From assembly GCA_021613535.1 (NCBI GenBank), contig CP075494.1:5270001-5334000 (forward strand): a stretch of 64,000 nucleotides of DNA, written 5' to 3'. Both the position numbers and the translations under genes were made by a program. The DNA is from Adineta vaga (lineage: Eukaryota > Animalia > Rotifera). This document shows, in pieces, positions 9,100-47,496 of the stretch (the first letter of the stretch is position 1; each line of letters begins with the position of its first letter). Under the pieces are notes generated by a model, which was not told the origin of the DNA, ran no database searches, and worked only from the letters and a program-made list of their open reading frames with translations.

Positions 9100-11771
9100 A
9101 TGAAACTATTTGACAGAATGCTTCGTTCACAAAGTGATGTTCAATCTTCATGTAAATCTTATTTGAACAAAGCATCAATTACAATTCAACCGTCACATGC
9201 ATGCAATGTACTTAATTGTAAAAAATCAGCGGCAAGAAATAATCTTTGTACTCGACATTTTCTTGCAAAGAGAAAACGAAGCGATTCACTAGAAACTATT
9301 GCCGTCATTAATTCACGATCAAAGACGAATGCACATCTTCAATATACTTTATGTTCTGTAATTCAATGTGAAAAACCAACTGCTACTAGCGGACTTTGCA
9401 CAAAACATTATGCAGAACGTTTTCTTCACGAATTTAATGAAATTATCAAACCACAAGATAAAACTAAACAGAACAAATCTCAATATATGTGTTCCGTTGA
9501 AAATTGTGACAAATGGAGTCAAAGGAATGGTTTATGTTTACTTCATCTCCAAGAGAAGAATTCAACGACAAATAGAAAAACAAAAACAAAAACCATGACA
9601 AAGTCAGGTAGAGTATCAATGAATTCAACCATACAAATTTTGAATATCAATTCAAACAATTCATCAAATGTCAATATCCATGAACTAAATCAAGAAATAC
9701 AAAATATCATGACTTATTCGCGTAAGTTTTCTTTTCTAAATTCTATGTATCATTCAAATATTATCTTGTTTAGAAAATGCATGTCCACCAAGACGTTCTA
9801 CTAAACGAAATTCAAAGCAAAATCTTCAGTCAGAACAATCATCAACTATAGGTAAAAAAAAAGAAAAGATCTTCTTTATGTCTTAATCTGACATTTTTCA
9901 ATCATATTAGATGTTCAATCAAAAGATCAGAATGAAGAAATTGATATAAACAGATGTCAATATACAATTTCTATGAATAATCATAATAAATGTTCAAATC
10001 TAGCTACATACAAATGTTATCACTGCTTATCGTCATTTTGTCTTGAACATGATTTACAACATCAAGAAGATATCGAAGAAGAAATGACTTGTATACTTGA
10101 CGAAGCCAAAGTAAATAACGAGATTACATTCTATCTAATATGTATATTTATCTTCTATTCTAGACATTGATTACAGAAATCCCTTCAATAAATATCGAAA
10201 GTGGCAGAAAAAATTGTGCCGAACAATTAAAACATTGGTTCGATATGACATTGAATCAAGTTCAACAGAAATATTATCAATTACAAAATCAACTTGATCA
10301 AATTCATAATGATATCGAAACGAATAAAGATCGATGGAAACAATCCTTAATATCTCGACTAGAAACAAATCTCACTTCAGTTTTAACTATACAATTACAA
10401 ACAGAAAAGATCGATGGAATAGAAATAAACAAAGCAAAAGATGAATTAGTTCGCTTGCAAAAACTTTGTGATTTACTTAACAATCAAACATTAATTACTA
10501 TATCGAATATTGATGATAATAATGAATTAAATTTTCCTTTACCTCATTTAATATTTCCAAGTATTGATATTGAAGGTTTCAATTGGACTGATATATTTTC
10601 AATAGAAAAAAAAGAAGATAAAACAAATCAATCATCGAATTGTAAATGCAAATGATCAGAATCATATGACAATATATATTTGATTTGTTTAGATTTTGAT
10701 GAACTTCTTGAAGCAATGATTGATATCGATGGTCATCAATTGGTAAGTTAGTAAATATTTTATCTGACATTTATTTGTATTTTCAATTATTTTAAAGATA
10801 AATTCAACTAGACATGATACTCATCCAATAGATTTTATTGGTCAATTTGGAGAGAATAATATGCAACAGGTTTGATTTTTTTTCATTTCAGATTGATATT
10901 ATTTTCTATCATACGATTCATATTTAGAGTTATACAGAAACAAATGGCGTGTTTTCAACGATATGTGTATCTCAATGTCCTAAAATCAGTCATGAACAAA
11001 TTATTGCACGTCTTGAAGATTGTGAAAAACTGGATTTGTCATCACAGAATTTGATCTGTTCAGATGTGCAGATAATTTCTTCTATTTTACATAATAACAT
11101 GGTCAGTGAAATAATATTCATTAGTTTTCTTTTCTTATATTAATTCTTATGTAAATTAAAATTAGATATTGACAACATTGATTCTTTCTCGTAATCAAAT
11201 TAAAGATGACGGTGTAAAATTCTTGAGTAATGCATTACAAAATAATCAAGTAAGAGAAAAATCTATTGTATGATTCAATTTGAAGTATTGATGTTGGAAT
11301 ACATCTATGCATTTAGACAATAACCACGCTTGATCTTTCGCAGAATCAGATTGGCGATGATGGAGCACGAGCATTAAGTAATACATTGAAAACTAATATA
11401 GTATGATAAAGAATTATTTGATTCTCAAAACCTTTTCATAATTTAATATAGACACTTACATCATTAAATCTTTCTCAGAATCAAATTGGTACTCAAGGTG
11501 GACAATGTTTCATAGATGCATTACAATCAAATCAAGTAAGAAAAATAGCCTTTTCGTGAATCTCTGATTTCATTTATTCACTTTTGTTCAGACACTCACT
11601 ACACTGAATCTCACCTTCAATCCACTTAGCAATGAAATACTTTGTGATTTAACATTAGCTTTAACCATCAATTCAAGCAAAAAATCTATTCATAAATCAT
11701 CTAATACTCAGAATTTAGCATCAACTTCACTCTCTTCCACATCTAGCTTTTGGGATAGTCTATTTTTGTGA
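9100..11771 (+). CDS. ZnF/B-box-like/coiled-coil/LRR family member 1: three C-x4-C-x9-C-x2-H fingers, N-cap, three single-exon LRRs and a terminal LRR exon
   Basis: Fingers CNVLNC..LCTRH, CSVIQC..LCTKH and CSVENC..LCLLH. B-box-like C-x11-C-x7-C-x2-C-x4-C-x2-H-x3-H in exon 9912-10110. Helical exon 10165-10641. The 84-nt phase-0 LRR exons are 11166-11249, 11317-11400 and 11452-11535. Terminal exon 11592-11771 ends in TGA. Confidence 0.85.
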
Positions 11772-25985: not shown

Positions 25986-28900
25986 TTATGCATATGAATT
26001 ATTTACTGAAATCTCGTCAGTATCATTCAGTTTTGATCCAAAACCAAAATATTTCAAGATTTCTTCTTTGACATGATTTAAACTCAGATCAATTGTTGTA
26101 AGTATCTATTTCGAATGGAACAAAAATCGATGAGAACAATGTTGATGAGAGCAAAATTCCATCTTACATGATTTAATTCTACTGCATTGTTGAGTTGTTG
26201 TACACCTTCAATTCCAATTTGATTTCGAGAAAGATCGAGTGTTATTAATGTCTATTATAATGAAAGAAATCTTCATTTATTTATAACCAAGGAAAAGAAT
26301 AGATTTCTTACGCGATTTAGTTTTAAAGCTTCAGCTAGATATTTCGCACCTGAATTACCAATTTGATTTCGAGAGAGACTAATTGTTGTTAAAGTCTACA
26401 TGAGAGTATGAAATAAAAGAAGAAAGAAAGAAAGAAAAAGATGATATTATACTTTGTTTGACTTTAATCCAGTACTGATATGTAGAATACCCTCATCTCC
26501 AATGGTATTTTCCGAAAGATTCAGAGTAGTAAGTGTCTAAATGAAAAATCGAAGGATTGATTTAAATGAAAGATGAGAATAGATCGAATTTACTTTATTT
26601 GATTTTAATAAAGCATTCAAATATTGTGCTGCTCGATTTCCAATTTGATTCCAAGAGAGATCGATTGTTGTTAACGACTATAATCAATATTAATCCACAA
26701 TAATTGAAAAATTTTCTTTATATTCTGTTTTGTCTTACTTTATTTCGTTGTAATGAATCGCTTAGAAATTTTAAGCTTCGATCTTCCATTGGATTTCCTG
26801 AAAGATTAAGCGTAGTCAATGTCTATATAAATGAATAAATCAGTTTTGTTTTCGAAGAAATCAAAGAATTGATCATTATTCTTACCTCGTTATATTTTAA
26901 TGTTAAACCCATATGACGCGCTACATCATCGCGAAAAGTATTTCCAGCGAGATTAAGTGATTGAAGTGTCTATGTGATCAAAAAGTAAATATATGAAATA
27001 GGAAAAAAGATGAGTTTTACATTATTTATTTGTAATGAAGAACTTATTCGTTGTCCACCTTCATTATCAATTTTATTCCACGACAGATCAAGTACACAGA
27101 GTTTCTAAGCGATAATTTTCGTATATGAAATGATAAAAAGATAAAAGAAGTCTATACCTTATTTAATTGTAATGCAATACTCAAATATCGTGCTCCTTCA
27201 TCGCCAATTTCATTCCATGATAGATTGAGAATAGTCAATGTCTACAATAAAATGTATTTATTCACACATATGTAGATTGAAAAAAGATGCTTCGCTCACT
27301 TTATTAAATTGTAATGCATTACTTAAATATTGTGCTCCAACATATGAGATCTTATTTCGATGAAGATAGAGTGTAGTCAAAGCCTAACATCATCTTTCTT
27401 TTGGATACAAAGGATAAGGATCGTTTTCCTACCTTGTTACTTTGTAATGCTGTACTTAAATACTGTGCTCCTTGATTTCCAATTTGATTCCAAGAAAGAT
27501 CAAGTGTAGTCAATGTCTATATATTCAACAGTAGTTGAATATTCTCTATCAAAACTAAATCATTGTCCTACTTTGTTTCTTGGTAGTACAATACCGAATT
27601 GATATGCTCCTTCATCTCCAAGTGGATTTCCAGATAAATTCAATGAAGTAAGTGTCTATGAAGACAGATAGCTAGGAGTTTAATAAATATTAAATTAAAT
27701 AATAACTCATACTCGATTTGATTGTAATGCAGCACTAATATAATGTGCTCCATCGTCACCAATTGTATTTCCAGAAAGATTGAGGACAGCTAAAGCCTAT
27801 AAGCACGATGCAGTCTTATAATAAACATGTTAATTGAAAGATATTTTTTGTCTAACTTGATTTGATCGTAGTGTAGTACTAAGAATTCGTGCTCCTTGAT
27901 CTCCAATTTGATTCCAACCAAGATCTAATGTTTTCAAAGTCTATATCTCAGAAAGAGTAATAATTGCAAAGATATTCAATCTATCTTATCGTTACATTAT
28001 TTGATTCCAATCCTTTTGTTAGATATTGCGTTCCTTTGTCTCGAATTCGATTTCCAGAAAGATTAAGAACGGTAAGTGTCTAGAATAAAAAAGAGTAATA
28101 ATCTTCAATTAATAATATGTAAAATGAATATGTGTTCTTACTCTATTTGAATCTAGTACATTACTTAAATATTGTGCTCCTTTCAGTGCAATCTTATTTT
28201 GAAGAAGGTTCAGATTGGTCAGCTTCTACAATAGAAGAAAAAGGTTAATACGCGAAAAAAACAAGTCATTTTTAATTTACTGTGTTCGATTGTAATGCAT
28301 CACTCAAATATCGAATACCATCAGCGGCTATGTTATTCTGATGAAGATCGAGTGAACTAATATTCTATTCAATATCATATAGAAAATATCGATATTTAAA
28401 GAATATATTACTAGATTGGATTTTAAAACATCACTCAATTGTTGTGCTCCTTCGTTTCCAATTTTCTTTCGAGATAAATTCAGTGCTGTAGGTATCTAAA
28501 TGAAAGCACATGAAACGTGTTTTTTTTTTACACTAAAAATCGGGATCAGCAATTGACTAACATTGCAGTTCTTCATCAGATGATGAATCATTATCTCTGT
28601 TTCTTGGCGACTTAGACACTGTGCCGAAAGATTCGTTTGATTGGTATTTCTTTTCTGTTGTTGTTGTTGTGAAGTAGAAGGACATGGTTGTAATGATTCT
28701 GAACATATTGATTCTGTATCTAAAGAAATAATGATGAAAAAGGAACAGAATGTAAGTCGTTTTACTCAATCTATTTAACTTCTATCTGAATATTATATTT
28801 GTACACCCTCAAGAACTAACCTTCATCGTCGATGTCACTGTCATTTTCAACATTCGATGAAAAATCATTCGAACTAAATAAAAAGAAAATAAAAATTAAC

Positions 28901-38132: not shown

Positions 38133-39326
38133 CGTTCTAACAGATATTACTTATCCGATACAACCTTGATATTTATTTAATAATATATTAATATGATACT
38201 TGCGTTACTGTATCGGTTCACATTTGTTTTGTTTCCTTCATAACAATACAATATACCTATACATATGCACGTGGATGCGTACTAAATTATCTTTCTATCA
38301 ATATTATGAGTGTGTCCTTCTACTACTATCATAAATGTTATGTCCAACAAAAAATGGATGATAATTGACATATGTATTTGAATTTTTTTAACTTTCTGCT
38401 GATTATTATACATACAGTCTAACTCATATAGATTGTGAACATCACTGTTCATCATTTTCTTTTGACTGAGAGAGATACACAATAGTATTAAAATATATTA
38501 GTATGTAAGAGGACACCAAAATCATTGTAGAGATTGGTCTACAAATTTTATTACGAAATTTATTTAGATTCGAACACGTGATTACTTTACGCATGATTTT
38601 TGTTATAGGTCTTTTACGCATCAACATATCCACTGTTTCTAGTGTGAGAGATTATAATCGTATAAATTCAGATGCTAACTTCAAACTTTTCCTGAGAATT
38701 AACTATGTTACATCTTTTGCCAACTTTAAAGTTGATATAAAAATAATTGTTCTAAAGACAATTGCGATGTGGCGACGATACATTGTCAATATTTTGGTGT
38801 AAGCGTTAAGTGCGTTATTGCATATTCACGATTTCCGACAATCACATATACTGCGATATACCAAACTCCGCGTGAACCTGTCGGACATATTAATCAACGT
38901 CAGTTGATTGAAAATAAAAATGAACTTAGAACTGAAGTGTGCTTTCGTATTTTCTTATTTAATCAAATCTTGAATAGCTCTATCATTCTACTACAAATTT
39001 CACTATCATTTGTTGTTGATCACTATTATCGTTCAACTCTCAACACGTTACTATATTGTTCAGACTGTGTCGCACGTATTCATATGCGTACTAGATTTTA
39101 TCAAAGACAAGCAGTTTCATCCATAGATTATCATACTTTCTGTTCTACAAGATATTAGTGTATAATTCAGGCATTTACAAATTTGCCTAAAATAAGGAGT
39201 CCATTAGCTAAATTTTTATGCAGAAATCAATCGATAACATCACAACGGTAAGTCATTTTTATGAAACAAAATCTGAAGCTAGTAGCATATCTAAAAGCAT
39301 AGTCTAGATCGTAAAAAGGGCCACCC

Positions 39327-42300
39327 TTATGCCATGTCCACGGATTCGTTCCAGTTCTTATTTCTTTCTATCATATTCAACAGCTGATTCTTCACATCAC
39401 CTGAAATACTATTGCCATCCACATTCAATGAGATCAGTGTCTGTAATGTAATGCGACGATTTCAAAGAGATAGATAGATAATAAGCTACTTCCTTTACCT
39501 CGTTCGATTGTAGTGCATTGCTCAAATATTGTGCTCCTTTATCTCCAATACCATTGAGAGAGAGATGAAGTGTGGTGAGTGTCTTCAATGGAATGCAATG
39601 ATTGTCAAGATACTAGTTGAACGAATGTGGTATGTCTCACCTCGTTCGATTGTAGTGCATTGCTCAAATATTGTGCTCCTTTATCTCTAATACCATTGAG
39701 AGAGAGATGAAGTGTGGTGAGTGTCTTCAATGGAATGCAATGATTGTCAAGATACTAGTTGAACGAATGTAGTATGTCTTACCTCGTTCGATTGTAGTGC
39801 ATTGCTCAAATATTGTGCTCCTTTATCTCCAATACCATTTCCAGAGAGATGAAGTGTGGTGAGTGTCTTGAATGGAATGCAATGATTGTCAAGATACTAG
39901 TTGAACGAATGTGGTATGTCTTACCTCGTTCGATTGTAGTGCATTGCTCAAATATTGTGCTCCTTTATCTCCAATACCATTTCCAGAGAGATGAAGTGTG
40001 GTGAGTGTCTTGAATGGAATGCAATGATTGTCAAGATACTAGTTGAACGAATGTGGTATGTCTTACCTCGTTCGATTGTAGTGCATTGCTCAAATATTGT
40101 GCTCCTTTATCTCCAATACCATTGAGAGAGAGATGAAGTGTGGTGAGTGTCTTGAATGGAATGCAATGATTGTCAAGATACTAGTTGAACGAATGTGGTA
40201 TGTCTTACCTCGTTCGATTGTAGTGCATTGCTCAAATATTGTGCTCCTTTATCTCCAATACCATTTCCAGAGAGATCAAGTGTGGTGAGTGTCTTCAATG
40301 GAATGCAATGATTGTCAAGATACTAGTTGAACGAATATGGTATGTCTTACCTCGTTCGATTGTAGTGCATTGCTCAAATATTGTGCTCCTTTATCTCCAA
40401 TATCATTGTAAGAGAGATCAAGTGTGGTGAGTGTCTTCAATGGAATGCAATGATTGTCAAGATACTAGTTGAACGAATATGGTATGTCTTACCTCGTTCG
40501 ATTGTAGTGCATTGCTCAAATATTGTGCTCCTTTATCTCCAATATCATTGTAAGAGAGATCAAGTGTGGTGAGTGTCTTCAATGGAATGCAATGATTGTC
40601 AAGATACTAGTTGAACGAATATGGTATGTCTTACCTCGTTCGATTGTAGTGCATTGCTCAAATATTGTGCTCCTTTATCTTCAATACCATTGTAAGAGAG
40701 ATCAAGTGTGGTGAGTGTCTGTCAAAGGAAGAACTATAGCAGTTTAGTACTATAATGATCAAACTTGCAGCATGTTTGTTTGTAATCTTATTCGACAAAA
40801 TCCTGACCTTTTGACTATTTGTGGTATAGGTAAGTGACAGTTATGTTTTGGTTAGTGGAACTGGAAGTGGACAATCGATTCAGTTCTCAGGAATTACTGA
40901 AGATGAGTTGTAACACACTTATGTGTAAACAGTTTTTGTAGCATATAGATTAATCGACGATAGAATGAGTGATTTGAGCGGAAGGTTGGCTACTAAAGGG
41001 TTGGTTAAGCTAGTTTTTGGCTTTCATATAGTTTGATTTGTAGTACATGAATAAACTTATGAGTCGATAAATTTGGATAAATGGGAATGAGAAGTATTAC
41101 AAAGAATTATCAACGGTACGAATATTCATGTTGAAGGATAGTTAACCGTGGAATGCTGCGAATATACACAGTGATTGGGGTCATATGAAGATTTGTGTGT
41201 TATTCAACCTATATTATCATGTCGACGAGATAAACTTGATATTGCCGCTTGAGCAAACATTTCGAGTTCAGTGAAAAAAGAAAGTTAGTTATTAGATACA
41301 TTTCGCTCTTTGAGCGTGACGGAGAATAGGGATTTAGCTCAATGTTGCCCATTTGTTTCAATGGAAAACAGTGTCTGTGGAGAGAGAAGTTGTTCTAAAT
41401 GGAACCTCAACTACACTCTAAGGTCGGATTGATCCTAAGTTTTTTGCATCCTTTAATTCCTATATTTTCTGATATCTTCTATCCGTTCCATATATTTTAA
41501 TCAATATTGATATATTTTTTAGAGCTTTGAAGGGTTCTATCAACATGTAGTAAAAAATTGAAAACTGACCGAAATATGAAAGAAATATAGAATGGCAACA
41601 AGTATAGGAATACAGAAACTATATGTCGAATCAGATCCTAGCTTACACTACTTATTACAAATAGTAAAACCAGAAATTTGAGTTGAATCTTTTTTTTTGT
41701 TGAAATCAACTAGAGTAGACAATAGTTGGTTCTACGGTATGTCGAATATGTTATTGTCGATGAAGTAATAATACAACACAATGCTGAAACTTGTCAATTG
41801 TTTGATTCATTATTTTGGAAATAATAGATTTTTTATCATATATTGGTCTATTTTATCTATTAAGATTTTATGCTTTTCGCCTCAGAATCAATCTTATATC
41901 TTTGCATTATTCGAAATGGTTTTGTATTGAACACTCGACTAATGCTGCTCAACTAGCATTCAGGCAAGGCGATACTGATAGCCGTATCGTTATCTATTTG
42001 TCGCAATTATTATAAGAGATAGACGTATTTTCAACTTCAAGTCTATTTATTTGTCGAAATAAAACGAGCAAATGGGCAAGATCTTGTTTATTCTAATGAA
42101 AAGAAGAAAAATAGAGTGGAACACATCAGAAATTTCCCTGAATAAAACGAATTCAAGTCTATTTATATATTGATGTAATGATAAAAGATGGAAGTTTCCT
42201 GACTGAAGTGGTGTATCTATCACGAGCTATAATTTAAATCAATCTATCATAGTAGGGAAGTTCAGATAAACCAAGATATTGTAATAAAATTCGCACAAAC

Positions 42301-45300
42301 TTTGCATCGTCTAATATTTGTTTAGGATAAATACGTTAGCATTTCCAAATACTAAAAGCAAATGTGTTTTCTTACCGTGTTGTTTTGTATTGCCTTTGAG
42401 ATAATTATTTTCACATCTTGTTGATTCAATTGCAGATAAGATAAACACAACACCGCGCTATCTTTATGACTCGCAATTCGTTGTTCGAGTTCTTCATTGT
42501 GATAAAGAAATGTTTTCTCAGCTAACATGAAGTCTAAAGAAAGTAACAAAATACAAAATATATGATTACTAAGAAAATCAATGATTTGAACCAAAATCTA
42601 ACGGCACTACAAAGAATATAATTCTTGTTTGAACAAAAAGTATAACTTGTCAAAGCTTTCATCTCGAAAGATCAGCTTTGGTTTCGAAAGTATTGTTATC
42701 AAGTATGGTTTTTGTACAGAAACAATTTTTTGAAGATTTCATAATTGAATAAAGTAAATGTGAAGTGTACCACTGCTCATCCTGTTAATGTAGAATTTAG
42801 CATTTCGAATGATTTGTTTATTTAATATGCAATCTGTGAATGAGTTCACATGAATATCTAGTGAAATCATCGTTCTTAATTTCAAATCAAGCATTCAACA
42901 ACTTTTCTGAACTGCGTATTGAAACATATCAAAACATCCAGCGTTAACTGAATCTATTCATCCGATCAACTTTTTATTAGAGCTGTACAATTTACGCTCA
43001 CGCTCATGACCATCGTGTAGCCGTAACAGCTAGCTCTATTATGAGGGCTGCCAATGGCGGTTCATTGTGTCACACCAGTCAACAATGATTAAAAAAGACT
43101 TTATTTTCATAGTATAGCTCAAAGAAGATTGTAACGCTCATTACAAATGAGCGTGAATTATACCACCCGAATTTTCATACTTATTCTATAATGTTCAAAC
43201 TTGAATTCTCAGAGTAATCCACGATCTCAGATGCTTCAGCATTTGAACTGATTAATTTCTCACAAATGATTATTGTTTGACATTATGAAACTTCTTTATT
43301 TTCAGTTCTCAACTTAATTTTAAACTATACGCACAGATATATTTTTCTGATGAGTAGTCAACTATCAAGTTTACTTAACTAATTTAAATATGCTTTATAG
43401 ATATTATCAATCAATTAATCATCTCCTACTGATTTCAGTAGTACATAACTGTCGTTATCAATAACGAACTTATATATTCAGAATAAAGTCGTACGTTTTC
43501 TCTGGCCTAATATCATGAGAAGATACTCAAGTATTATTATTCGTTTACCTATTTCTGCTGCTATTGTTCCTGTAGTACTTGCTCTTGATTCGATAGAACT
43601 AAAATAAAAATATGCGCAAGTCATACAACAAAGAGATCTTTGTAGCTATGTCTTTTTAGTTCATACTTGTCACTTGAGCCATTTGGATTTGAATTCGACA
43701 TAAAATCTTGTCCATACACCTAAATAATGTGATATTTTCATATAGCTTTGATGTAAGACGAAGAATTAAACGATAGTGTACCTCTTGATTACCATGATTC
43801 ATTGGTTGATTATGAAAATTCTCAGTAGTTGTTGATGTATTAATAATCTTTGACGAAAATTGCTGTTCGGGTGTGTTAATCTATGTGATTTTTATGATTT
43901 CAGACATATTAAGGATCCAAAAAAATGCTAGCTTACCATAACTTCTGTCTCTTTCCTTGTTTTGGTTTTGTTCATTTTAATATGGTTCGCTGTCGTCGGA
44001 GTGACATCAAAGTCTGGATTATCTGCCAGGTCAAAAATAAATATCATAAGTGTCAACAAGAAATATAACAAGTTATAAGTAATAAGTGGATATTTCAAAG
44101 TATGATTAAAGGAATTGTTTCATACAGACAAAAGTTCCTATTTCTCTCGCTTGATTTGTCTAAAAAAGACTAAGATAAGAATAACAGGACAACTAAGGAG
44201 GATCATTCTACATTGATTCTATACGTGAAACTTTCAAAGTGACATTTAATGATTCGATTTTACTGAGTCTGAATTTTAAAAGATAAAAACTATTTTTCTG
44301 AACGACACTCGACGACTGGAGGAATCTCCCAATATCACTACTTACTATTCGTCAATTCAGAACGATTGCGCTGAACAAGATTAGTTTGCTGTTGACCAGA
44401 ATACTCCATCGTCTCTACTCTAGTATCCATAAGAAAATTCGTGATCCGGTCGATATTGCCAGTAACAATCGTCGGAAAAGATAGATAAGATGTATCTTGG
44501 TCCACTTGATTGATAGCATTGGACGAAGAAATGGAAATTAACGGTTTGTTTTCAAGTGAATAGAAGAATTGTTGTATATGAGCAAACTCATTTTTAGCTC
44601 TACTAAATTCTATTCCATCTATCTCAGCTTTTTGTGACTGTTCCATCAATACACAACCAACTTTTGTTTCTACTCGATTGGCTAATCGATATTTCCATTG
44701 GACTTTGCTCTCGTCGATATATCTGTTTTTTCGGTCGAGTTCCATTCGAAGCACATTAAATCGATTATCAATAATGTTACGCATGATTTGTTGCCATTTA
44801 TGAAGATCTTCTTCGCAATTCTCCCGGCCACTAATAATATCTATTGCCTGAATTTTTTTGAATAAATCCTAGAAAAAAGGACAACTACAATTACTCATTT
44901 TATAGTAAGTTATAGTTGAGTGGAAGACAAAGAATTAGATTCACTCTGTTATTTGTCGGACTAATTTTTCAAACAAAGTGACTTTAACAATAGAAATATG
45001 CTGAACATTTATAATTAGAATATTGTTTTCATAGAATATGACAATATACCTCTGTTTCACCTAATAGACGCTTTATTTCTTCTTTGAGCTGTTGCTGATG
45101 TTGCACGCCATGTGGAAGACAAAATGATGATGGACAATGACTGCATTTATAAGACGCCACATCTCGACAACTAAAATAATCACTAGATGATGGAGGCATA
45201 TATTCACACTTTCCTGTATGTGCTATTCTGTTTTGGTTATTTTGATTGTCAGTAGAATTCTCAGCTAATAAATGTGTAAATATTGAAAAATATATAAACT

Positions 45301-45797
45301 ATGTGGTAAATGATGTCACAATAGTTACCTGATCGTTCAATGGTTATAGAAGAATGAGTCATATACATTCCATTAATAGATCCTGTGTCGTTACCTATAT
45401 GTTGCATTTGTTCGAGACCAACATGTGGAACAGTACTCTGTCCATTTAAATAAATTGGCGTTGTTGCTCCATGCATATTTTCTGAAATAGATGGAAAAAA
45501 GAAAGATATCGTTAGACATTTCTACTTAATACTCAACGAAGACATACCATGTCCCTCACAAAAGTTTGAGCTAGCACAATTTTCATCGGACAAATCTGAG
45601 TTAATTGCAGTGGCATGTTGACGATTTTTTTTTTCAGTCAAATGTCGAGCACATAAACCTTCTCGTTGAGATTGTTTCTGGCAGTTATCGATTGAACAGA
45701 TGCGCCGCCATTTATCGTTAACGAGTCTCTTTTTCACATCACTGTGAGCCAACGATTTAACGCGTGTCTTATTTTTGGTGACTTTACTTGGTATCAT
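39327..45797 (-). CDS. ZnF/B-box-like/coiled-coil/LRR family member 4 with nine near-identical single-exon LRRs
   Basis: Exon 1 (45797-45548) has CSIDNCQKQSQREGLCARH. B-box-like exon 45264-45050 reads CEY..CRDVASYKCSHCPSSFCLPHGVQH. Coiled-coil exon 44868-44346; N-cap exon 42533-42376. Nine LRR exons lie in 39499-40718 and the terminal exon 39440-39327 ends in TAA. The linker exons (43500-44300) could not be phased unambiguously, so intactness is unproven. Confidence 0.78.
39497..40720 (-). repeat. Tandem repeat with a 142-bp unit (84-nt LRR exon + 58-nt intron); 9 exons and 8 introns
   Basis: Exons begin at plus-strand coordinates 39499, 39641, 39783, 39925, 40067, 40209, 40351, 40493 and 40635. 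Each reads ag|TLTTL(H/D)LS(L/G/Y)N(G/D)I(G/R/E)DKGAQYLSNALQSNE|gt on the minus strand. Confidence 0.97.
41418..41641. mobile_element. Possible decayed MITE in an intron of family member 4
   Basis: Left end ctaaggtcggattgatc is an imperfect match to the reverse complement of the right end, ctaggatctgattcgac. There is weak subterminal inverted similarity (ttcctata), and tacact occurs on both flanks. Confidence 0.3.
42978..43170. mobile_element. Candidate hAT-like MITE (193 bp) in an intron of family member 4
   Basis: Left end tagagctgtacaatttacgctca versus right-end reverse complement tcgggtggtataattcacgctca. The flanks ctttttat and attttcat match at 6 of 8 positions (possible TSD). The acgctca motif is repeated subterminally. 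Confidence 0.5.
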
Positions 45798-47496
45798 ATG
45801 TTCAAATATGTATTAAATCTAGAACGAAAGTCGCAAATATTATTATGTCAAATCATAAAGGTTGTCTGCAATAAAGAAATTACGAGAAAAGACACATAAA
45901 GTACTAATACTTTCAAAGAGAATTATTATACGGAGCAGCTGGTTGAAAAAAAAATATTATAACATTGGACGTTGTGACTCTATAAAATATTAGTAACTAA
46001 ATATAAATAAGTAATTATTAGAACATTTTTTGGTATATTATAATATTTTTTGTATTAAATAATAAGAAATGAGAATGTCTTTTGTGCCCGCAGCCAAGAA
46101 TCATGTACAAAACACCTCTTTCGGTTGTTCTCCTGCACTTTCTAAAGATAATTTACGATGTTCCACTTGTATTGTGATTTCTTGGAGCAATTTTAAAACT
46201 GAATTATAATGTAATCGAGCAATGCCGTTTTCTTCACAAACAGAAGCTTGGTGAATATTCTTTTGGATTAGAAAAAGCTGCATAGCAAGATTATCCATAT
46301 CTTTTTCAATTAAAGAAGATAAAAAGATATTTTCATCTATTATAAGAAAGGTGCATCTTACCTAATTCCATACGAGTAACACAAACGATCAAAAGTTGAG
46401 CCGAAGGGATAAGTTTGTATACAAATGACATTCTGCTTCGAAATCACTAGACTTTTATATACAGCGTATGATACTATGGTCATGAATAGAGAATATTCCA
46501 TTTTTGCCATCAGTACGTCCAATTTAGGCTTGCGTCTACGTCCACGTCCGTCACAATAAGCGTTTTTGCTTTCTCAATTCTTTTACTCTAATAGCAAAAG
46601 TACTTTTTTCTTATCTTTATTTTATGTTTACCTCAAATCTCCAACTTGTATTTTTGTTTCGAAATTATATTTTTTACAAACTTACTTTCTCTTCCAACCT
46701 AAGTGAGTGTGTCTTTACATCCTTACGTATGATAAAAAGAAATAGAAAAAACACTAACCAAACAAAAGAAAAGAACGAGCAAACCATTTGCGTCAGTCTT
46801 CTCTACGTCTGATCGTCAAATTCTGTAGATATAAAATTTATTTAAAAAATGAGAAAGAACAAAGTTTATGATTGCAGTTCATACCTGTTTAGTATCGCGA
46901 ACATTTCATTAATCTACGTCTCTCTTGGCTTGTTTTGTTTTTGAAAAAACTATTCGACTATAATGATAAGATCATATTGAATATTACAAACGATTATGAT
47001 CAATTTTGCTATTAAATATCGATCATAAAAAAGACACCAAAGAACCTGAGTTCACTTCGAAGATATTTATATACGCATATTCATCTTATAATCATATAGT
47101 TTGTATGTTTTATTTTTGTTATCATAAGTACAATCAGAAAAAATAGATCTACCAGTTGGTTTAGGGTTTTTTTCGAAACAGATTATTCATACATATGGAT
47201 TGAATAAAGAGTAAAGAATTGATTCTGACTTATATCAATAAAATTTAAAAATCTAGATTACTTTCAAATCAAGTAAGGAATACTCTATGCCTTTACAGTT
47301 CAGCATGACAACGAATATTGTGCAAGTCCAATCGTATCTGTGTGTATATCGTGAATATAAACTTTTATCATACATTATATAGTTTAATACAGGTCATACC
47401 AGATCATCAAATACACATGAATTAAATGAGTGGATGAAAATTAATCAATAAAAAGTTAATTTTTCTTCTGAACTACAATCATATTAATGAATAATA

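Follow-up and report, generated by a model that had tools for sequence, protein, structure and literature searches.

How nine nearly identical leucine-rich repeat (LRR) exons came to stand side by side in one gene of the bdelloid rotifer Adineta vaga, and why these exons differ from one another at only four residues, are the questions raised by a tandem array on chromosome 5. The array lies in a stretch of 64,000 nucleotides (the window; C5:5,270,001-5,334,000 of a searched genome of six contigs and 100.8 Mb). It makes up all of the canonical LRR region in a transcribed A. vaga gene, I4U23_023493, with a predicted product of 818 amino acids. The explanation that we favor, with a probability of about 70%, is a recent in-place amplification of an exon-intron cassette accompanied by recombination, diversifying selection on the binding face being the most likely cause of the remaining differences. 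In this model, one 84-nucleotide phase-0 exon and its 58-nucleotide intron would have been amplified to nine copies through unequal recombination between cassettes, and later recombination would have reshuffled the units. Selection on binding specificity would most likely keep or drive the differences at positions 6, 9, 11 and 13, so that strand-end and loop residues would differ while scaffold residues and introns would stay uniform.

Tandem Repeats Finder (TRF) reports a single tandem array at 39495-40730, with a period of 142, 8.7 copies, 97% matches and zero indels. Read on the minus strand, it resolves into an LRR cassette array (39499..40718) of nine one-LRR exons and eight intervening introns, each cassette spanning 142 bp. 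The exons are all 84 nucleotides long, open, of phase 0-0, and read TLTTLxLSxNxIxDKGAQYLSNALQSNE, and the introns are 58 nucleotides each with GT..AG ends. Since 142 is not divisible by three and the intron contains in-frame stops, the array can be read as protein only when the introns are removed; with phase 0-0 throughout, every further cassette lengthens the protein by one LRR in frame. The unit belongs by its motif to the 28-29-residue type, LxxLxLxxNxL followed by a helix. The array exon matches the Pfam family LRR_6 (PF13516) at 32.2 bits (cut-off 23.4, E=8e-8) and each array exon does so, which supports the original prediction of an LRR coding array, here of ribonuclease inhibitor (RI) type.

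In gene order, residues 6/9/11/13 are D-Y-G-E in array exon 1 (40635..40718, included in the public model UJR20362.1), D-Y-D-G in exon 2 (40493..40576, its haplotype present in a DNA-run unitig at 40515-40578) and again in exon 3 (40351..40434), and D-G-G-G in exon 4 (40209..40292). They continue with H-L-G-G in exon 5 (40067..40150, DNA-run unitig 40094-40153), H-G-G-G in exon 6 (39925..40008, with an RNA contig and an X20 contig at 39843-40014) and exon 7 (39783..39866), H-L-G-R in exon 8 (39641..39724) and H-L-G-G in exon 9 (39499..39582); exons 3, 4 and 7 to 9 are readings of the assembled sequence. Cassettes 2 and 3 are identical across all 142 bases. Seven exon bases vary (16, 25, 26, 27, 32, 37 and 38), all of them amino-acid changing and all in codons 6, 9, 11 and 13; codon 9 occurs as TAC, GGA or CTC, codons 14-28 are invariant across the nine units, and the introns vary at four positions (3, 12, 14 and 55). 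The original prediction had listed nine 84-nucleotide phase-0 exons with 58-nucleotide introns, the same residue series, seven nonsynonymous and no synonymous exon bases, invariant helix codons, four variable intron sites and the switching of codon 9 among three alleles. TRF and direct re-reading of the sequence reproduced all of this, the residue series exactly.

An artefact of assembly or polishing could be the objection here: the copy number might be inflated, or variants might have been put in the wrong copies. We aligned contigs of four public runs (X1, X13, X14 and X20) to window 39300-45299. In the DNA run X1, depth is 33-38 in the single-copy flanks and 59-137 in array unitigs, which is 1.7-3.9x single copy and 73-95% of the nine-copy expectation derived from the 31-mer multiplicities of the assembly. 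The array is certainly multi-copy, and short-read unitig depth is not reliable for the exact number of copies. That depth falls below expectation, that short-read contigs break in the array, and that polishing might have assigned variants to the wrong copies, giving a false appearance of mosaics, would all fit an artefact. However, the unitig depths require several copies, X1 unitigs contain the D-Y-D-G and H-L-G-G haplotypes in unaltered form, and H-G-G-G is found in an X13 RNA contig and a 172-nucleotide X20 contig, so that all three codon-9 alleles are seen in independent runs and are therefore independent of the assembly. The array-to-flank joins also occur unchanged in independent runs, comparable arrays are numerous at other loci and also occur in a second genus, and long reads far exceed the 1.2-kb length of the array. 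We consider an assembly or polishing artefact highly improbable.

Structural variants had been suspected behind loose contig ends in the array and were rejected for three of them, which trace to paralogues sharing 31-mers (C3:13752115 and window 26587) or to the next exon; the remaining loose ends have no match inside the window, which is what the search covered. One X14 contig carries an insert of 37 letters whose translation is that of a further LRR exon junction, and the contig is therefore taken to derive from a paralogue. One X1 DNA contig (depth 33) links 40561/40643, skipping 81 bases with non-canonical ends, and this join is probably a graph artefact of the repeat.

The array is transcribed and spliced. 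Contigs of X13 and X14, runs of two studies, carry CT..AC joints (GT..AG on the minus strand) upstream of the array at 45049/44869, 44345/44023, 43936/43881, 43781/43720, 43666/43599 and 43548/42534, and a loose contig end indicates a seventh upstream intron at 45328-45265. None of these upstream joints occurs in the DNA run X1, and X13 and X14 therefore contain RNA. Within the array, a 114-nucleotide X13 contig consists of the last 57 nucleotides of one array exon and the first 57 of an H-G-G-G exon, and both cuts coincide exactly with predicted splice sites; X1 has no such junction either. In the alignment this junction fell at 40209/40008, and the consecutive pairs 5-6 or 6-7 fit equally. 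Its depth of 27, compared with ~3.4 in the upstream exons, is of the order expected for many identical junctions of one transcript collapsed into one contig. This exon-exon junction bears out the predicted removal of the 58-nucleotide introns. The three contigs of run X20 (organism B) are unspliced, one spanning an intron, and are uninformative on this point.

By using the 173-residue exon at 44865-44347 as a query, we identified the host gene as that of the 562-residue protein P0001 (UJR20362.1, 'hypothetical protein I4U23_023493, partial [Adineta vaga]'; 100% identity), residues 527-550 of which match LRR_6 at 29.8 bits. The public model has nine upstream exons, joins ...AIQNNT to array exon 1 and breaks off within the array, after the first five residues of its exon 2. 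Protein databases therefore lack ~256 residues of our prediction, comprising the other LRRs and the cap. A search for contigs encoding P0001, which may have excluded its own genome, returned none. We predict a gene of 19 exons, each open in phase, whose lengths sum to 2457 nucleotides, or 818 codons and a stop. Frame continuity was judged from exon lengths and per-exon translations, exons were searched singly, and folds were run on natural homologues. The predicted protein has a Cys/His-rich N-terminus followed by long helices, a linker, nine RI-type LRRs and a cap.

When did the array arise, and from where? Across the whole genome, the closest other sequence to the cassette is at most 82% identical and, because no other genomic place exceeds that value, the cassette was amplified where it sits. 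Intron diversity in the array is 0.027, the exons are identical outside codons 6-13 and there are zero synonymous differences. Because the silent sites are identical, the opposite of what older arrays of this genome display, we read the focal array as truly young. Codon 6 is incompatible with codon 9 by the four-gamete criterion, as are codons 6 and 9 with intron position 55, and the array units are therefore recombinant mosaics. The duplication of exon and intron as one cassette, which had been claimed, is thus supported as a tandem cassette duplication with recombinant units.

A different origin of the variants, targeted diversification, had been offered in the same claim and finds no support, since the codon-9 alleles are common to non-adjacent units and therefore spread by duplication and recombination, not by repeated origin. 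Another account would be a programmed process, somatic or driven by a dedicated mutator, in the style of the lamprey variable lymphocyte receptors (VLRs). What speaks for it is resemblance only, namely LRR cassettes whose flanks are uniform and whose binding residues vary, whereas the variant codons are common to units and stable in DNA and RNA runs of several studies, and ordinary germline recombination explains all observations. No Rfam family matches window 39000-46000, the 7 kb round the gene to which this search was limited, and the array introns have no excess of folding relative to shuffled sequence (z=+1.3 to +1.8). We regard programmed diversification as extremely improbable. A protein search for isolate variants with the 49-residue open frame of the cassette returned a single unrelated match, at 71%.

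The positions of the variable residues were examined on a modeled LRR fold, that of a natural homologue from Rotaria sordida (P0005, residues 445-857) and not that of the focal protein. The model has a predicted local distance difference test score (pLDDT) of 86.7 and forms a regular solenoid with one strand and one helix every 28 residues, its best structural matches being ribonuclease inhibitor and NLRP LRR domains (template-modeling score, TM, 0.85-0.9). In the 28-residue register the strand occupies positions 4-6 and the helix positions 13/14-26; of the variable residues, the one at position 6 is thus the last of the beta-strand, those at 9 and 11 fall in the ascending loop and that at 13 forms the helix cap. 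In the structures of RI and of plant nucleotide-binding LRR receptors (NLRs), ligands are contacted by the xxLxLxx strand and the loop after it, which are also the hypervariable part. On this model, the variation that had been claimed to line the concave face would form a rim of strand end and loop, and would not lie strictly on the sheet.

Is the concentration of differences on this rim more than chance? In the focal array, diversity reaches 0.141 within codons 6-13 and 0.027 within introns, and is 0 over the remaining 60 bases of the exon. Variable sites are in excess in codons 6-13 relative to the rest of the exon (7/24 vs 0/60, Fisher p=7.6e-5) and relative to the introns (7/24 vs 4/58, p=0.012), the latter difference becoming 6/24 vs 4/58 (p=0.057) when codon 9 is counted as two events. 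The focal array alone is underpowered. A neutral young duplication, in which a few unselected mutations, one or two of them multi-nucleotide changes at codon 9, lie together by accident or because of some local peculiarity of mutation, would fit the small number of events and the modest excess over introns. It would also fit the sequence context, ATCTCTCT directly preceding codon 9 in the array exons and the CTC allele lengthening this CT-rich run, and the absence of synonymous changes is not significant alone. However, the clustering within the exon is strong. In addition, among 76 diverged LRRs of the family, position 9 is the most variable and the helix-face positions 14, 15, 19, 26 and 28 are more variable than 11, 13 and 6; because these helix-face positions stay invariant in the focal array, the pattern is not simply one of the least constrained sites changing first. 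The same positions are, moreover, hypervariable in seven other arrays with many more events, above the rates of their introns. We therefore find neutral duplication unlikely as an explanation.

Those seven arrays come from a genome-wide comparison. A search of the genome with one exon yields more than 1067 candidate LRR exons, and we sampled 20 loci fetched from the candidate list and one earlier locus on C1. Arrays of constant period are present in 9 of the 20 loci and at the C1 locus, with periods of 139-145 bp and 8-21 units; the more than 280 exons sampled from the genome have a fixed size of 84 nucleotides and the same intron phase on both sides, and the introns measure 55-61 nucleotides. 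In the seven younger arrays, diversity is 0.04-0.12 in introns and 0.17-0.30 in codons 6-13, and the minimum number of amino-acid changes is 27 at codon 9, 22 at codon 8, 22 at codon 11, 13 at codon 6 and 12 at codon 14. Pooled over the seven, the ratio of nonsynonymous to synonymous changes is 118:18 at the face codons (3, 4, 6, 8, 9, 11, 13 and 14) versus 66:62 elsewhere (p=3.6e-10). Along closest-unit links, differences per site reach 0.066 on the face, compared with 0.032 in introns (p=7.9e-6) and 0.027 at other exon sites. Evenly spread variation in a larger sample had been set beforehand as the refuting outcome, and the seven other arrays display a focus on the face instead. Of the two processes originally proposed, diversifying selection is thus probable, and targeting is the part that finds no support. 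Selection that favors diversity at contact residues explains the data best, although the proof is loose and comes for the most part from the seven sister arrays. The focal array is the youngest sampled case of a genome-wide, fast-changing class of LRR genes.

The older arrays raise a further alternative, that the focal array is itself old and under concerted evolution, gene conversion and unequal crossing-over homogenizing scaffold and introns while selection preserves old differences on the face. Four of the seven arrays have a synonymous diversity outside the face codons that is 2-6x their intron diversity; L026 (C6:1503000-1510000) is the extreme case, with 0.04 in introns vs 0.25 at synonymous sites, and L017 has 0.07 vs 0.17. 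In a Rotaria socialis homologue with 141-bp cassettes (L036, CAJNYU010003189.1), the values are 0.08 in introns vs 0.21 at third codon positions. Introns more uniform than synonymous sites are found in the older arrays L026, L017, L018 and L019 and in L036 of R. socialis. This uniformity suggests either preferential homogenization of introns with exon diversity retained, as has been argued for major histocompatibility complex (MHC) genes, or constraint on the introns. For the focal array, an old age would agree with codon-9 alleles that lie 2-3 bases apart and look old, and with the mosaic units. In contrast, older arrays keep many synonymous differences, for example in Leu codons, whereas the focal array lacks any difference in its exons beyond codons 6-13; these exon sites off the face vary less than its introns do, a better fit to recent amplification. 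Long-term concerted evolution is thus an improbable account of the focal array, and it would still imply selection for diversity of the face.

Several points weigh against recent amplification with selection on the binding face. Only about 6-9 mutational events are recorded in the focal array, with an excess over introns at the p values given above, and short introns are partly constrained and form an imperfect neutral yardstick. In the pooled comparison, array units are not independent, and counting by minimum change and by spanning tree is approximate and takes no account of recombination. The count of nine copies comes from the assembly, with unitig depth somewhat under expectation. RNA evidence within the array consists of one junction type, no contig covering either the join of gene exon 9 to the array, which is taken from the public model, or the terminal exon. 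The N-terminal module has neither a Pfam family above cut-off nor a fold match. Gene anatomy, splicing, mosaic units and the return of the same pattern in further arrays are observed; selection, ligand binding and any immune role of the focal gene are what we infer.

Of the remaining gene, all on the minus strand, exon 1 (45548..45797, with the ATG at 45797) encodes a CxxxNCxKxxQxxGLCxRH motif with a weak Zf_WRKY19 match, and exon 2 (45329..45481) was read from the sequence. Exon 3 (45050..45264) encodes a Cys/His-rich putative zinc finger, its Pfam matches all sub-threshold, and is delimited by an RNA joint and a loose contig end. Exon 4 (44346..44868) encodes the long-helix module; it is bounded by RNA joints, matches P0001 residues 208-380 at 100%, and its splice site lies 5 nucleotides ahead of an in-frame stop. 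Four linker exons follow, with RNA joints for each: exon 5 (43937..44022) and exon 7 (43667..43719) in both X13 and X14, exon 6 (43782..43880) and exon 8 (43549..43598). Exon 9 (42376..42533), present in RNA contigs of X13 and X14, encodes a degenerate first LRR (...LCLSYLQLNQQDVKIIISKAIQNNT) and ends in phase 0. A GT..AG intron of 1657 nucleotides (40719..42375), across which the public model joins exon 9 to array exon 1, precedes the array. Downstream, a last GT..AG intron of 58 nucleotides (39441..39498), read from the sequence and unrelated to the array introns, leads to a predicted terminal exon (39327..39440) for a C-terminal cap LRR of 37 residues (TLISLNVDGNSISGDVKNQLLNMIERNKNWNESVDMA) and a TAA stop at 39329-39327. 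A profile built from 287 family exons found no relic LRR exons in the 1015-nucleotide and 1657-nucleotide introns, and the array is therefore the entire canonical LRR region of the gene.

The 1657-nucleotide intron also contains a repeat of ~135 bp (41458-41592) with copies 88-90% identical at C6:661529 and C5:15797982. A diverged copy of this repeat is transcribed, as judged from an X14 contig match with 11 mismatches, and it has no Rfam match.

The original prediction had called the protein a receptor, a term that is unproven; nothing observed here speaks for a receptor or an immune function. P0001 contains no NACHT, NB-ARC, TIR, F-box or other Pfam domain above cut-off, NACHT and NB-ARC are also absent from the upstream open segments, and no signal-like hydrophobic stretch is visible by eye at the N-terminus; the protein is probably intracellular. 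The N-terminal region has sub-threshold Pfam matches to Zf_WRKY19, zf-AN1 and C5HCH. An AlphaFold 2 (AF2) model of residues 140-385, built as a single chain with 19 aligned relatives, has small hairpins followed by helices of 30, 65 and 23 residues (pLDDT 72 overall and 80-93 in the helices, predicted TM score 0.47), and Foldseek found no match to this fold in the PDB. A TRIM or B-box reading of the N-terminus was rejected, as RING and B-box Pfam matches are not above cut-off and there is no fold match; the likeness to a B-box with coiled coil is a resemblance that does not place the module in that family.

The long-helix module has seven copies in the genome, six of them in a 60-kb cluster round the window (C5:5.254-5.315 Mb) and one on C4, and four genes of this Cys/His-rich helical and LRR type lie within the window. 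One paralogue (26168-28364, minus strand, N-terminal module at ~30010-29466) has 16 strict 84-nucleotide one-LRR exons separated by diverged introns of 49-63 nucleotides. Two further helical-module paralogues, at 9115-11535 (plus strand) and 38060-36072 (minus strand), are each followed by 84-nucleotide LRR exons. Relatives were found in Adineta steineri, Rotaria sordida and R. socialis, and the family therefore spans both bdelloid families sampled; judging from database sequences, it appears to be known so far only from bdelloid rotifers.

Some of the other arrays have features of their own. In L005 (C1:10321496-10324733, minus strand), the 145-bp cassettes form a higher-order repeat of three cassettes and 435 bp; cassettes 2-3 and 5-6 are identical or nearly so, and codons 6, 8 and 9 are the sole exon differences of cassettes 1 and 4. 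The R. socialis array is broken by an assembly gap, and its public model (L036:9968-10770, CAF3647198.1) translates 57-nucleotide in-frame introns as coding, which yields repeated inserts of 19 residues. L016 (C2:15.72 Mb), L017 (C1:1.36 Mb; C1:1358000-1366000) and L018 (C4:14.59 Mb) are F-box/LRR arrays of 17-21 cassettes of 141 bp, hypervariable at positions 6, 8, 9 and 11, and an open frame with an F-box, scoring 20.2-21.4 bits relative to a cut-off of 20.5, lies ~525 bp upstream of each. This arrangement suggests that the three arrays may belong to fast-evolving receptors that recognize substrates for ubiquitin ligases.

Bdelloid rotifers are the classic example of an ancient asexual lineage, which raises the question of how they keep up with their parasites in the absence of ordinary sex. 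It is conceivable, as a tentative extension of our data, that LRR diversification driven by recombination operates genome-wide in bdelloids. About 1000 or more candidate phase-0 cassettes, with introns held more uniform than the synonymous sites of their exons and acting as substrates for unequal exchange, would reshuffle hypervariable face modules behind F-box or other adaptors and so give a renewable intracellular immune repertoire, possibly widened by in-frame exon skipping. If true, duplicated and recombined LRR binding modules would be a concrete and testable source of recognition diversity for which recombination within genes would suffice. The focal array offers a convenient place to start, being so young that nearly all differences between units fall on contact residues. 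Introns that are more uniform than synonymous sites further raise the question of how concerted evolution coexists with selection for diversity in one gene.

How does this gene compare with known systems? Ribonuclease inhibitor exons each hold a pair of repeats. The RI-type fold is shared with the LRRs of vertebrate ribonuclease inhibitor and NLRs, as judged from the TM scores of the homologue model, and the rotifer gene lacks the NACHT domain of NLRs. Lamprey VLRs are assembled somatically from flanking LRR cassettes; like them, the rotifer array has LRR cassettes with variable concave-face residues, but contigs of bulk runs gave no sign of somatic change in it. The expansion of LRR families in A. 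vaga has been mentioned in general terms (PMC3846280), and we found no description of its LRR cassette arrays in the literature. In the zebrafish NLR-B30.2 genes, LRRs sit on single exons and are variably duplicated, gene conversion is reported for the family, and the authors judged the LRRs not particularly variable (PMC4852459). Nematode F-box adaptor families are expanded and under positive selection, with other substrate-binding domains (PMC8120010); the A. vaga arrays L016-L018 likewise follow an F-box, whereas the focal gene has none.

The closest parallels come from outside the animals. Brown-algal ROCO genes, including those of Ectocarpus, carry one LRR per 72-nucleotide phase-2 exon, which is duplicated and shuffled, with positive selection at the concave face; their LRRs are of a 24-residue type joined to ROC-COR GTPase domains, and they have been proposed as candidate immune receptors (PMC3341825, PMC11378527). 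The rotifer array shares the principle of one LRR per exon of fixed size with symmetric intron phase. Its exons are, however, 84-nucleotide, phase-0 and RI-type, and are joined to a bdelloid-specific Cys/His-rich helical module, and the genes are not homologous. Inactivated LRR exons have been reported in ROCO introns (PMC3341825, PMC11378527), and the long introns of the rotifer gene yielded none. Tetrahymena LRR genes have exons of exactly 90 bp, phase-2 introns of ~120-260 bp and an association with LINE-like (long interspersed nuclear element-like) elements; recent clonal expansions were ascribed to unequal crossing-over, and the authors knew of no other eukaryote so uniform (PMC6564038). 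As in Tetrahymena, the exon-intron repeat of the rotifer is visible at the nucleotide level and is uniform in exon size, intron length and phase; unlike Tetrahymena, the rotifer is a metazoan, its introns are of 55-61 nucleotides and no transposon link is seen. Uniform exon-intron LRR arrays like those of a ciliate and of brown algae have thus arisen independently in an animal.

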